From the NCBI GenBank assembly GCA_004431415.1, contig QPMI01000214.1, positions 62,001 to 126,000 of the forward strand: a stretch of DNA of 64,000 nt, read 5' to 3'. Shown here in pieces: positions 2,913-31,152 of the stretch. Under the pieces are notes generated by a model that saw only the letters and a program-made list of their open reading frames with translations, was not told where the DNA came from and did no database searches. Position 1 is the stretch's first letter. Every line of letters begins with the position of its first letter. This DNA is from Cyanophora paradoxa CCMP329. Taxonomy: Eukaryota > Plantae > Glaucophyta. The translations under genes and the position numbers were made by a program.

Positions 2913-3166
2913 CGGTGCAGGCGAGGGCTCGCCGCCAGCGCCCCCACCCGCGAGCCGCCGCGCCAGCAGCAGCCGCCGCGCCCGCGCCCAAGCCCGGCCC
3001 CTCGCCCTGCGCAGCGAAGGGAACGAGGAAGTGAGGGAGCGAATGCCAGAGGCCCAGAACGGGGCGCGACCGGGAAACCAGTTCAGGCCGGCACGCGCGG
3101 CGCACGCGCACACGTGGCACGCAACCGCGCTCGGAACGCGCCGATGCAGCGCGACAGATCGCGATC

Positions 3167-3325
3167 GAACCGGTTCGCGAAACAAGTTGCGCCGATGCAC
3201 CCGATACATCACGACATTAAGAACCGGTTCGCGAAACGGGCCGCGCCAACTTGCAAGCTGCGCCGCCGAGCCGGTCCGATCCAGCATGACATTATAAGAG
3301 ACGGTTCGCGAAACGGGCCGCGCCA
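3167..3325. repeat. Three degenerate tandem copies containing CGGTTCGCGAAAC, upstream of the PHD gene
   Basis: Copies start at about 3167, 3221 and 3301. Copies 2 and 3 share CGGTTCGCGAAACGGGCCGCGCCA. Confidence 0.8.
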
Positions 3326-4211
3326 GCTCGGAAGCTCCGTCGGAACTGGCCCGCGCCCCCGGCCCCCATTAATATTGCCCTGCATGAGTGAATGGAACCA
3401 CGCCAGATCTGGTCTACTCCTTACCGAACTTCGGAACTATAGCTACGCGCATGATCATGACCGCGGTCGATCGCCGATCGGGTAACCGCTAGCGCTGCTG
3501 TTGAGTCAGTGTTGACCAGCACAGGGGTACAGTCAACCTCAGTCGATCTCAACCTTAGCGCCGTACTACGGTATACGTAATCGTAATCGTAATTCTTAAG
3601 CTTCATGTGATACTACTAGTACTAGGCTATGATATTGCTAGACGGTCGAGACAGTCTTAATGCTGATCGTAATCGTACGCGTGACCGTCGGACTCATGAT
3701 CAGTGATCGTAATTCTAGATCTTAGCTATATATATAGCTAGCCCCCTTGGTATACGTAAGGCCTGATGAGCTACATGGCCATCATGGCCGGGCAATAGCC
3801 TTATATAATTAATTATATGAGCTTAGCTTAGCTCCCGCTCATGATCACCGCAAACCGTGCCACGGTGATTCTGATCATGATCGTAATCGTGCATATGCAT
3901 ATATAGCTGCTGATCGCAAACCGTAATTTTGATCGTAATTCGTAACCCTTGGGCCTCTAGCTAGAGCTGCCAGGCTGCGCATGCAGGCCTAGGCGCCAAC
4001 CTCAGTCGATCTCAACCTTATACTCGGCGCAGCCGGACGCGTCGATGTTCGCGGCACAGTTTGAACCTCGCCATGCATATGATCATGAGCGACGACGTCG
4101 ACGCGCCGAGCAGCTTCGCCGCAGACGTCGTAATTCGTATACGTAACCCTAGGCCTTGCACTTGGCCCAGTGGGCCTCTTAGCCGCAACCGTACGCGTGA
4201 TTCTGATCGTA

Positions 4212-27237: not shown

Positions 27238-30200
27238 CTAGAGTCGGGCTCGCGTCACGCCGACCTGGGAGGGCGAGGTTGGGCACGTGAGGCGGGTGGG
27301 GGAAGAAGGCGGGCGGGATAAGAGGAGGAGGAGGAGGGGGGGAGGGGGGGGAGGGGGGAGGGGGGGGGGGGGAGGGGGGAGGGGGGGGAGAGGGGGGGGG
27401 AGGAGGGAGGCGCACGCGATTGAGGTAGTGCTGCAAAAATGGTAGATCGAGGTGGCGCATGAGAAAGTCGAAAGAGGGCGGGAATGGGAATGGAAGGGAA
27501 GCTCGGTCGAGGCACCTCGAAGGGGTCACCCTGGGCCTTCCCCAGCGGGGCGTTGAGCAGCTCGTCGGGGACTGCGCGCGCTGGCACGTCAGCGGCGCGC
27601 TCGCGCGGGAGGGGGGCGTGGAGGGGAGGAGGGGAGCGGGGGGAGGGAGGGGCGGGGGGTCCGGCGGGCGGGCGGGGGGTCGGGCGCACTGCCCCAGGCG
27701 TCGATGAGGTCGAGGGCGCTGACGCGAACCTCGCGGCAGAGGGCCACCACCTGCCGCCGCACCTCCTTGCCCCGCCCCCGCGTCAGGAACTCGTGCGCCC
27801 GGAACGAGCCTGCGCGGCTCCCCTGCGTGAGCCGCCCACGCAGAGCGGCGCGAGGCGGGGACGGGGCAGACCGAGGTCCGAGTCGATGCGGGAGAGGGCG
27901 TAAAGGTCGCAGAGGGCCTTCAGGACCGGCCGGCACTCGGGCGGCGCCCCGCGGACGGCGGCCTGGAACTGCTCGAGGATAACCCGCTCGACGTGCGCCT
28001 GCGCCGCCTCCAGCAGGTGGCCCAGGCACTCGTTCCAAGCCTGCGCGCATGCGTAGCGCGCCCGGCGGGGCCCGCTCAGCCGCCGCCCAAGCCTAGACTG
28101 GAACGGCAGGCGCTGGGAGGCAAGGGGGCTCGCGGACCTCGAAGAAGCCGAGGCCGGCGGCGGTGCGCTTGCGGAGGCGCAGGGCCGCCGTGTGCACCAG
28201 CCGCCCCTCCCGGAAGCCGAACGCCGCCAGCTGCCGCCCCCGGCCCCCTCAGCGCTCCCAGAATTCGCGAAACGCAGCGGGGCTGGCACCTGGTAGGCGG
28301 GGTCCGAGAGGTCCCCAGCGGCGTCCACGGGCCGGTGCTCCATCGCCCACACCCGCACCTGCCGCCTGTCAGGGGCCTTCCCCCCCGGCGCCCTGTCGCC
28401 CCCCGCAGACCGCGTGGCCGACGTAGGCGAGCGCGCCGCTCACGCCCCGCCCCGCGCGGCGCCGGTACTCGGTAAGGAGCGCCTTTGCGACCTGCTGCAT
28501 GAGGACCGTGTTGTCCCCCTCGCTGCCGCCCCGCGCGCATCAGGGCGGCGACGGGCAGCGAGGGCGGGGGGGCGAGGGGCGGACAACGTCGTGAAGATGT
28601 CGTGGTCGTTGCGGAGCGTCCCGATCCGGTTGTACGCGCTGTACCCGTGCCCACCTGCGCCGCCCCGCGTGAGGGCTCCCAGGGGATCGGAGTGGCGGGG
28701 GCTTGTACCGCAAGCCTCCCGGCACACCTGCGCCGCCCCGCGTGAGGGCTCCCGGGGGACCGGAGTGGCGGGGGCGTGGTGGCGGGGGCGGGGGCGGGCC
28801 TGGAGGGCCTTGGCGGTGTGGGAGGTGATGTGGGCCTTGAGGCCGGCCGAGAGGGCGTGCACCTCCGCCGCGTCCCCCGCCCCCCGCTCTGTCTCCGCCA
28901 CCCCCGCTCGCCCCCCCGGCGCCGGGCGGGGCCGGGCCGGGCCGGGCGGGGCACCGGTGTAGCGGCGGACGAGGTAGCGCGCGGCGCTGCGCAACGATGT
29001 CGCGGTCGCTGCGGGCGCTGGCGGCGAGCATCGAAACCAAAAGCTGCGCACAAGTCATGCGCGTAGGCAGCCGCGAGGAGCGGCATCAGCTTGATCTGCT
29101 GCGTCTGGTAGTCCAGCACCGCTGCGCCCCGCGACCGTCAGCGCCCCGCCCCGCGGCGCCGGGCGGGCGGGCGGACAGATCTCGGGGCCGGTGGGGGGCC
29201 CGAACTGGCGGCGGGCGGCGCCGTAGCGGATGGCGATGGCGGTGGCGAGGCGGAGGACGGCGACGGAGCCCATGGCGAGGCCGACGCGCCCGCCCGTGAG
29301 CTCCCCAACAACAGCTCCAAATCGCTTCTCGGCGTTGGGGATCGGCGTCTTGTACACGCCGGCCTCCGAGACGCCCCCGAAGCGGTCCAGCAGCGCCTCC
29401 CGCGGCACCCGCACCCGCTCGAACCGCATCCACCCGTTGTCCACCCCGTTGAGCCCTACCTTCGGCCTGCCGCGCCCGCCGCCGCGTCGGCCGGGGCGCT
29501 CGAGCGCAGAGGCGGGGGTCTGGGGCGCGCCCGCAGTCGCCGATGGTGACGCCGGGGAGGGTCTTGCCCGTGTCGGGGTCCCGCAGCGGCACCAGGATCG
29601 CGTGCACGCCCTGCGCCCCGCCCGCTCGCCACCGCCGTCGCCCCGCCCGGCCCCGCGCAGGGCGCGCCGCGCACGTGGTCTTCCCCCCCGACGAGGAGCC
29701 TGAGCGCACAGGGGCTGTTGACGCGGCGCTGCCAGGGAGCGGCGGGGCGGGGCGCCGTACCGTGCAAACACCGTCGCCATCAGCCCGTGCGCTGCCGCCC
29801 CGACCCCGGGTCACACGCCGCCCCGCAGCGCTCGCGATCGGGCGCAGGGCGCACTCGCGGCGTTCCCGATCCACCTGCGGACGAACGCTTAGGTCAGGCA
29901 ACTGCAAGGAGCCGGGGGCGGGGGGAGGGGGGGGGGGGGGGGGGTGAAGCTGGCTTGCGGCCCTCCCTTTTCCGTGGGCAGCCGCACCACTTCAAGGCGG
30001 AATCGTTCGGAGTGTGGACGACGAACTCGCGCGCCGCGGAGTCCCACGCAGCGGTCGTCTCGATACCACGGACGTTTGACCCGTGGCTGCCGCCCCTTGG
30101 ACTCAGCGCCCCGGCCCGGGGGGCGGCGATTGCGGAGGCCGGAAGCTACCCGAGCTCCCTGCGGCGAGGTGCATGAGGCGGACGGCGACGGCAATCGCAG

Positions 30201-31152
30201 GCGGGGGCGCAGCAGAATCGCAGGCGGATGCGCACGTCATGGCAAAGCAGCCCGGGAGGTCAATCTTGTCGATCAGGTCTAGCAGCTGCGTGGGAAGGGG
30301 GCTCAGGGTCAGCCGCCGCCCGCCCGGCCCGCCACACGCGCTCGCAGGGCGTTCGCGGCGCCACCTTAGCGTGGTGCATCTGCGGCCGCGGGAGGGCGCA
30401 CGTGAGCGCAAGATGCCGCCGGGGTGGGCAGGGCGCGGACCTCGGTGCCGAGGTTGAGGACGGAGCCGCCCCAGAGGCTGAACTGCACTCCCGTCTTGAT
30501 CACTGCGCATGCGCGAACGTGAGCGCACCTCGAGCCGCACAAGCACGTCGGGACCTTCTTACGTGCCCAGGCTCAGATCAAAGTAGCACACGCCCTGCGT
30601 TCTCTCTGCTCAGCAGGTGCACCCGCGCGGCCCGGGCTTGCGGATGGCGCCGCGCCGGCGGGCATTGGGGGCGGCGGGCAGGCAGGCGGGCCGCGCCTCG
30701 AAAGCGGCGAAGTAGCGAGCCGGCTTGTTCTTAAGGTCGCGCACCTGCGGCCCGCGTGTTGAGGAAGGGGGGGCCCGAGCGGCGTTTAAGCCGCACCCTA
30801 AGGAAACCGTTCTTTGCAAGAACGCGGAGCTGCTGGAGAACGCGCTCCCTGTGGGCCTCTTTGTTCGATTCAACATCGAAGCAAAAGACTGGATCGCTGC
30901 GCTGCCGTAAGTCTCACATCGCTGCGCCCGCCGAAGGCGCGCGCGCGCGCGCGCCTACGAATCAGGTCTATGACCCGCCGGCGGGTTTCCACGATTTCCG
31001 GGTCTGCACCGAGCAGATATGTCTTCAATACCTGCGTCATAAGACGATCGCGCGTCACAGATGAGCGCGCGGGCCGCGGCGTTGGTATTCACCGACTGCC
31101 AATTCGCTTTGCTGCCGCCGCTGGGACCGGCCGAGCGAGAAGGACGCGACAT
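27238..31152 (-). CDS. ACOX: Peroxisomal acyl-CoA oxidase
   Basis: [67 protein letters not shown] and TTFEGDNTVL. C-terminal PTS1-like ARL*. Confidence 0.93.

Follow-up and report, generated by a model that had tools for sequence, protein, structure and literature searches.

A 19-nt micro-exon between two introns with a common 3' portion in an acyl-CoA oxidase gene of Cyanophora paradoxa: a candidate for intron gain by local copying

Introduction

How introns are gained is still a matter of debate, because the sequence from which most gained introns derive cannot be found. Several systems have nevertheless been described in which a source or a process is apparent. In the potato RdRp gene, a tandem duplication across an intron-exon boundary, which included exon sequence, gave rise to a new intron that uses a cryptic exonic donor, and the gain was proven by outgroup species (Ma et al. 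2016, PeerJ, PMC4974935). In the tandem AGGT model of Rogers and Hellsten (ATP2A1; PMC3265369), local duplication likewise provides the splice signals, with AG|GT at the end of the copy, and the new intron consists of duplicated exon sequence. Break repair in Daphnia pulex has produced short, intron-sized insertions flanked by short direct repeats, for which presence/absence alleles were seen and most of the filler could not be traced to a source (PMC4202315), and the insertions attributed to synthesis-dependent microhomology-mediated end joining (SD-MMEJ) or polymerase theta carry filler copied from nearby, with microhomology at the junctions (PMC2943611, PMC7407515). Introners, reported from Micromonas, Aureococcus and fungi, are mutually similar, recently gained introns present in hundreds of copies that resemble one another over the whole element (PMC3879977, PMC4540971). 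Here, we describe a pair of neighbouring introns, 17 and 18, in an acyl-CoA oxidase (ACOX) gene of the glaucophyte Cyanophora paradoxa CCMP329, in which almost the whole of intron 18 repeats the end of intron 17. The gene lies on a 64,000-nt stretch of DNA (assembly GCA_004431415.1, contig QPMI01000214.1, positions 62,001 to 126,000 of the forward strand), which was analysed in full and is hereafter called the window; all coordinates are positions within it.

Two neighbouring introns share their 3' portions

On the minus strand of the ACOX gene, introns 17 and 18 flank a micro-exon of 19 nt (Table 1), an arrangement that had been proposed in a preliminary description made from the DNA letters and that was borne out both by mapping of the public protein P0010 and by transcript joints. 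Positions 28652-28702 and 28725-28775 have 51 nt in common with two mismatches (96% identity), exactly as first reported, and the match can be extended to 57 nt at 93% identity with a spacing of 73 nt between the copies. The copy accounts for 51 of the 54 nt of intron 18, the sole exception being its first three bases, and the alignment of the two introns contains no gap. The shared stretch runs through the CTCAC motif, a G-rich tract and the CAG acceptor into the GTG of the following exon. The micro-exon itself is not duplicated, as had also been noted: when the 19-nt exon parts are placed in the 73-nt register they match at 8 of 19 positions and encode different conserved residues. The two copies are separated by 16 unrelated bases and are therefore not in tandem. 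P0010 maps exactly onto these exons, so that the continuity of CREACGGHGY through splicing of both introns, which the preliminary description had deduced, holds. In one respect that description was amended, since the boundaries of the upstream intron 17 are GC-AG and not GT-AG.

The similarity stands far above that of any other introns of the gene. The local alignment of introns 17 and 18 scores 43.5, against 27.5 for the next best of the 325 intron pairs and a median of 8.5, while shuffled sequences score 8.1 +/- 1.4 and never exceed 15.5; of all 325, no second pair is similar. A 26-nt core of the repeat is present at these two sites and nowhere else in the window, none being expected from shuffles, and scans of the whole window for local, non-tandem repeats returned the intron 17/18 pair and one intergenic repeat (3209-3342) only.

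Table 1. Coordinates of the ACOX gene and of the features around introns 17 and 18.
Feature	Position	Strand	Description
Acyl-CoA oxidase (ACX2-like) coding region	27238-31152	-	27 exons and 26 introns; product is public protein P0010 (644 aa)
Exon 17	28800-28888	-	89 nt; ends GCC CTC CAG (A-L-Q395)
Intron 17	28728-28799	-	72 nt, GC-AG, phase 0 after Q395; first 21 nt C-rich and unique to intron 17
Micro-exon GTGTGCCGGGAGGCTTGCG	28709-28727	-	19 nt; V-C-R-E-A-C and first base of Gly402
Intron 18	28655-28708	-	54 nt, GT-AG, phase 1 within Gly402 (G|GT); GTA followed by the 51-nt copy of the intron 17 end
Exon 19	28585-28654	-	70 nt; GT GGG CAC GGG TAC (G-G-H-G-Y-S-A-Y-N)
Repeat copy 1	28722-28778	-	last 51 nt of intron 17 and GTGTGC of the micro-exon; from repeat search (57 nt, 93%)
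Repeat copy 2	28649-28705	-	nt 4-54 of intron 18 and GTGGGC of exon 19
CTCAC branch-like motif, intron 17	28742-28746	-	A at -16 from the acceptor
CTCAC branch-like motif, intron 18	28669-28673	-	within the copied part
GGT, left member of 3-nt direct repeat flanking the 54 inserted bases	28707-28709	-	read from the sequence
GGT, right member of direct repeat	28653-28655	-	source and target have GGTG in common here
GTACAA in exon 19	28630-28635	-	identical to first 6 nt of intron 18 (28703-28708)

Some weaker resemblances were also recorded. Next in mutual alignment score, at 20-27, come introns 26, 24 and 9 (27265-27415, 27572-27689 and 29875-29987, minus strand); they contain long tracts that are C-rich or poly-C, seen on the plus strand as runs of G (27280-27425 and 29920-29945), and their similarity is probably a matter of low complexity, not of homology. 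The intergenic repeat belongs to a stretch of lower GC content (3160-3342, plus strand), apparently intergenic, in which a unit with the near-palindrome AACCGGTTCGCGAAAC is present three times at intervals of about 77 nt, the best two copies being 85% identical. It was considered as a second case of twin introns and rejected, as its members are intergenic, follow a 77-nt period and are not introns. A functional RNA within the part shared by introns 17 and 18 was likewise considered and rejected: an Rfam search with it gave no match, its folding was not unusual (z-scores of -0.5 and +0.6), and neither C/D nor H/ACA boxes were seen in it.

Both introns have lengths that are multiples of three and are free of stop codons, and an open reading frame (ORF) of 203 codons (28440-29051, minus strand) runs uninterrupted across them. 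ORF-based gene callers would accordingly insert 24 and 18 spurious residues within the CGGHGY region. A search of PDB sequences with this read-through ORF gave no match, and a word search with it returned distant ACOX fragments only, at 38-42% identity, among which no ORF-level relative was informative on the 18 extra residues.

Splicing and integrity of the locus

Contigs from three RNA-like runs belonging to three different studies (X15, X17 and X19) were aligned to positions 27950-29850. All three contain the 54-nt joint of intron 18, which on the plus strand reads CT..AC after a shift of 2, that is, GT..AG on the coding strand, and all three contain the 72-nt joint of intron 17, which reads GC..AG after a shift of 1, within the joint ambiguity of 4 stated for it. 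Between the flanking aligned pieces lie 20 contig letters, which become exactly the 19-nt micro-exon once the ends of the pieces are corrected. The remaining introns of the stretch are skipped in the same contigs, which therefore represent transcripts. Contig depth in the bins of both introns equals the contribution of the micro-exon bases alone, so no contig retains either intron. The RNA check called for by the preliminary description thus had a clear outcome, the transcript contigs of all three studies splicing both junctions exactly, and introns 17 and 18, being removed at GT..AG or GC..AG boundaries, are spliceosomal introns.

At the DNA level, a contig of run X2 spans positions 27950-29850 with no differences and no gaps, and DNA contigs across this interval show no intron-less joint. 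As that contig was assembled separately and its locus is identical, an assembly duplication, the artefact foreseen in the preliminary description, is excluded; an assembly artefact is further at odds with the splicing of both junctions in transcripts. Fourteen DNA runs contain 99% of the sampled words; the DNA runs listed share the same sequence and may include the source of the assembly, and are consequently silent on other strains.

Proposed origin of intron 18

A number of features bear on which intron is the parent and on how the copy was made. Intron 17 has a donor, GCCCGCC, that is typical of the ACOX gene, and possesses 21 further nucleotides of its own, whereas in intron 18 the donor, GTACAAG, deviates at +3, +5 and +6 from the consensus of the gene, G[T/C]SCGC, and is the sixth weakest of the 26. 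The homology continues across AG|GTG into the exon, and since it thereby includes exon bases that are absent from excised intron RNA, an origin at the DNA level is favoured. Removal of the 54 nt leaves TGC GGT GGG; the split Gly402 codon, GGT, is a rare choice, made at only 6 of the 65 glycine codons of the gene. The 54 nt lie between two GGT triplets, and GGTG is common to source and target, as expected for gain by break repair through non-homologous or microhomology-mediated end joining, although these matches are short and their support is weak. At both internal mismatches intron 17 has a CpG and intron 18 a TpG or a CpA, which is ordinary decay after copying.

The three bases of intron 18 outside the main copy may also have had a nearby template. 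The hexamer GTACAA with which the intron begins recurs in exon 19, where it lies exactly 73 nt further downstream, in keeping with the register of the main repeat, and 19 nt past the point of insertion; it is rare in the window, at 0.11 per kb per strand. It is possible that this exonic GTACAA served as a second template of the filler, a suggestion to which we attach little weight. Filler pieced together from templates on either side of a break is the signature of SD-MMEJ (PMC2943611; PMC7407515).

On balance, and with slightly better than even confidence, we regard intron 18 as a young intron that arose by a local, non-tandem, templated insertion of DNA. According to this scenario, a break or a replication template switch would have occurred within the Gly402 codon of a once continuous exon (GAG GCT TGC GGN GGG CAC), and repair synthesis would have copied about 51 nt from 73 nt upstream, namely the end of intron 17 with its CTCAC branch-like motif, G-rich tract, CAG acceptor and the GT(G) with which the exon begins, before being resolved on the GGT(G) microhomology, perhaps by SD-MMEJ or a polymerase-theta-like process. 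Because the resulting 54-nt filler would begin with GTA and bring a working branch site and acceptor, the spliceosome could have removed it precisely, leaving the reading frame and CGGHGY intact and the 19-nt micro-exon between parent and daughter introns. The preliminary description had likewise proposed a templated insertion of the 3' half of intron 17. Its anatomical basis stands, comprising the 51 of 54 nt that are copied, the branch motif and acceptor, the exonic GTG, the off-consensus donor and the GGT repeat, while the gain itself, its direction from intron 17 to intron 18, its timing and the repair pathway are what we infer from that anatomy.

Several points weigh against this account. 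The gain of intron 18 is deduced from a single genome, and the count of the core covers the 64-kb window. The microhomologies measure only 3-4 nt, the left junction is unclean (CAAG against CACG), and the GTACAA match was spotted after the fact. The extension of homology into the exon is only modest evidence, because AG|GT follows 7 of the 26 acceptors of the ACOX gene. A templated stretch of 51 nt is also long for typical polymerase-theta filler.

Alternative explanations

Gene conversion, which the preliminary description had named as the alternative, would make introns 17 and 18 both old and ascribe their similarity to conversion or repeated homogenisation. Such a process could maintain the low divergence of 2 in 51, and, as no intron position is shared with streptophytes, neither the position of intron 17 nor that of intron 18 can be dated. 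Conversion requires prior homology, however, and unrelated introns of the gene share only the G-rich acceptor consensus of about 12 nt; lacking the homology needed, they would still presuppose an earlier duplication. The tract converted would moreover have to span all of intron 18 but its GTA, without a gap, and end within 3-6 nt of the exon on one side, and comparable similarity is found in no other intron pair of the ACOX gene. We therefore hold conversion to be unlikely. A little less credible again is the origin of both copies from a mobile or introner-like element of a dispersed family, through two insertions or through a single one and a later partial duplication, with GGT as its target-site duplication. 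The 54 nt are indeed flanked by a 3-nt direct repeat, and DNA contig depth over the two copies, at 138 and 312, exceeds the single-copy value of 59.6, but the excess sits on the C-rich, low-complexity beginning of intron 17 (28773-28813, depth 3709) and not on the core, which occurs only twice in 64 kb. Neither terminal inverted repeats nor an unusual fold are present, and what is shared is the 3' portion of intron 17 alone, 51 nt, not a whole element bounded by terminal repeats or held in a stable structure.

The remaining explanations appear improbable. Excised intron 17 RNA might have been reverse-spliced 19 nt downstream and its cDNA recombined into the gene, the 5' part being lost later. 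Donor and recipient would then have been part of one transcript, and the model does predict similarity between introns of the same gene (reviewed in PMC3629103). It also predicts a copy of the entire parent intron and nothing more, whereas at this locus GTA stands in place of the initial 21 nt of intron 17, its GC donor among them, and the homology takes in the exonic GT(G) that excised introns do not carry; recombination with cDNA, furthermore, tends to erase nearby introns, and the gene retains 26. We give this route a low probability. A source in cDNA of a lariat intermediate was rejected, given that the copy starts 35 nt upstream of the branch A and its limit does not lie at a branch. Least credible of all is a 73-nt tandem duplication over the boundary of intron 17 and the exon, as in potato RdRp, after which the exon copy would have been lost or replaced. 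The 73-nt register common to the main repeat and the GTACAA hexamer would fit it, and it has a published precedent (PMC4974935), but the exon parts show no relationship and code for different conserved residues, which led us to reject a simple 73-nt tandem duplication, and a second, exact deletion would be needed to restore the single CREACGGHGY.

The C-rich 5' part of intron 17 deserves a separate remark. This segment, CCCGCCCCCGCCCCCGCC, is matched by very many DNA contigs (depth 3709 versus 60) and is for this reason taken to be a common low-complexity motif.

The host gene and its relatives

P0010, which bears the name tig00000912_g5442.t1 in EukProt, could be placed exactly on the window, its 27 joined exons translating to the public protein with no differences; exon 14 alone (29178-29462) matches it in all of its 95 residues (100% identity). 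ORFs over the exons of the gene match the Pfam families PF22924 (ACOX_C_alpha1) and PF01756 (ACOX), and P0010 as a whole contains the domains PF02770, PF22924, PF00441 and PF01756, as well as both the CGGHGY and FEGDN motifs. The product is thus identified as an acyl-CoA oxidase by its middle, C-alpha1 and C-terminal domains together with these motifs. Its identity to plant ACX2 proteins and to Gloeochaete ACOX is 50-58%, the closest relative in protein collections being a Gloeochaete transcript (58%), and P0014 is a C. paradoxa paralogue. Other matches are plant ACX2 genes or contigs of transcript size, and a scan of metagenomes with exon 14 returned relatives at 50-57% identity only, none of them from a glaucophyte.

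The gene is densely interrupted, with 26 introns in 1935 coding bases or about 13 per kb, and its exons span 15-290 nt. Micro-exons are numerous, the exon lengths including 15, 15, 19, 20, 25, 27 and 28 nt. Its introns are rich in C towards their 5' ends and in G towards their 3' ends, with the donor consensus G[T/C]SCGC and an acceptor that consists of a G-rich tract ending in GCAG. GC-AG boundaries are found in five of the 26 (19%), at 30897-30954, 30595-30696, 30503-30566, 29467-29530 and 28728-28799 on the minus strand. At third codon positions, GC amounts to 89% and T to 7.4%.

For comparison, the ACX2 genes of Arabidopsis, Physcomitrium, Closterium, Marchantia and Selaginella were mapped onto their own loci. 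Six intron positions are conserved among these five streptophyte genes, and none of the 26 Cyanophora positions coincides with a streptophyte position. This shows that introns have been fully turned over between the streptophyte and Cyanophora lineages, and says nothing about the age of intron 17 or 18. The published C. paradoxa genome has a size of 100 Mb, a GC content of 67.6%, 9.2 introns per gene and a mean intron length of 86 bp, and its bacterial-derived genes have 13-27 introns (PMC6704402). Given this intron density, the load of the bacterial-derived genes and the absence of any shared ACX2 position, the lineage has plainly gained many introns, which speaks for a gain at the ACOX locus too.

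Significance and comparison with known intron-gain systems

The host lineage has taken up introns in very large numbers, genes of bacterial origin not excepted, and the ACOX locus offers an instance with an obvious source, splicing of both introns and no change to the coding sequence. It indicates that local copying of DNA can deliver a ready-made branch site and acceptor to a new position without a transposon. A broader and rather doubtful possibility is that the intron density and the micro-exons of Cyanophora result in part from recurrent, transposon-free 'budding', of which the ACOX pair would be one young instance. In such a process, repair synthesis would copy the branch-site and acceptor half of an intron into the exon some tens of bases downstream, and each intron could seed an adjacent daughter. 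If many such neighbouring pairs exist genome-wide, Cyanophora would become a system for counting and dating the events of an intron-gain mechanism and for testing it by experiment.

The preliminary description had suggested that this could be a mechanism of intron birth distinct from introner transposons; to take it as distinct from the mechanisms already known would be an overstatement in view of the precedents in potato RdRp (PMC4974935) and Daphnia (PMC4202315). Introners agree with the ACOX pair in mutual similarity and, if intron 18 is indeed young, in recent gain, but the ACOX sequence is present in two copies in 64 kb, is shared over the 3' part only and has no transposon features. From break repair in Daphnia it has the short, intron-sized insertion and the short flanking direct repeat, and it differs in that the source of the filler can be named as the neighbouring intron; filler copied from close by and microhomology at the junctions are also what is seen in SD-MMEJ and polymerase theta insertions. 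The tandem AGGT model has in common with it a local duplication that supplies splice signals and an AG|GT at the end of the copy, yet intron 18 consists of duplicated intron sequence and not of duplicated exon. As in the local duplications, the source is identifiable within the same gene, at the end of intron 17, 73 nt upstream of the copy, whereas tandem copies that include an adjacent exon segment are not found. Among published cases, the potato RdRp gene comes nearest. There, as would be the case here, the branch site, tract and 3' splice site were inherited from a neighbouring parental intron of the same gene, the donor was supplied by a site at the former exon and the new intron is spliced in vivo. 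Unlike the potato duplication, the ACOX copy lies 19 nt downstream of its source, no exon is duplicated, the protein is unchanged, a micro-exon has been formed and one genome provides the evidence. On this reading, the ACOX pair is a non-tandem variant of gain by boundary duplication and by break repair, and its mechanism is not wholly new.

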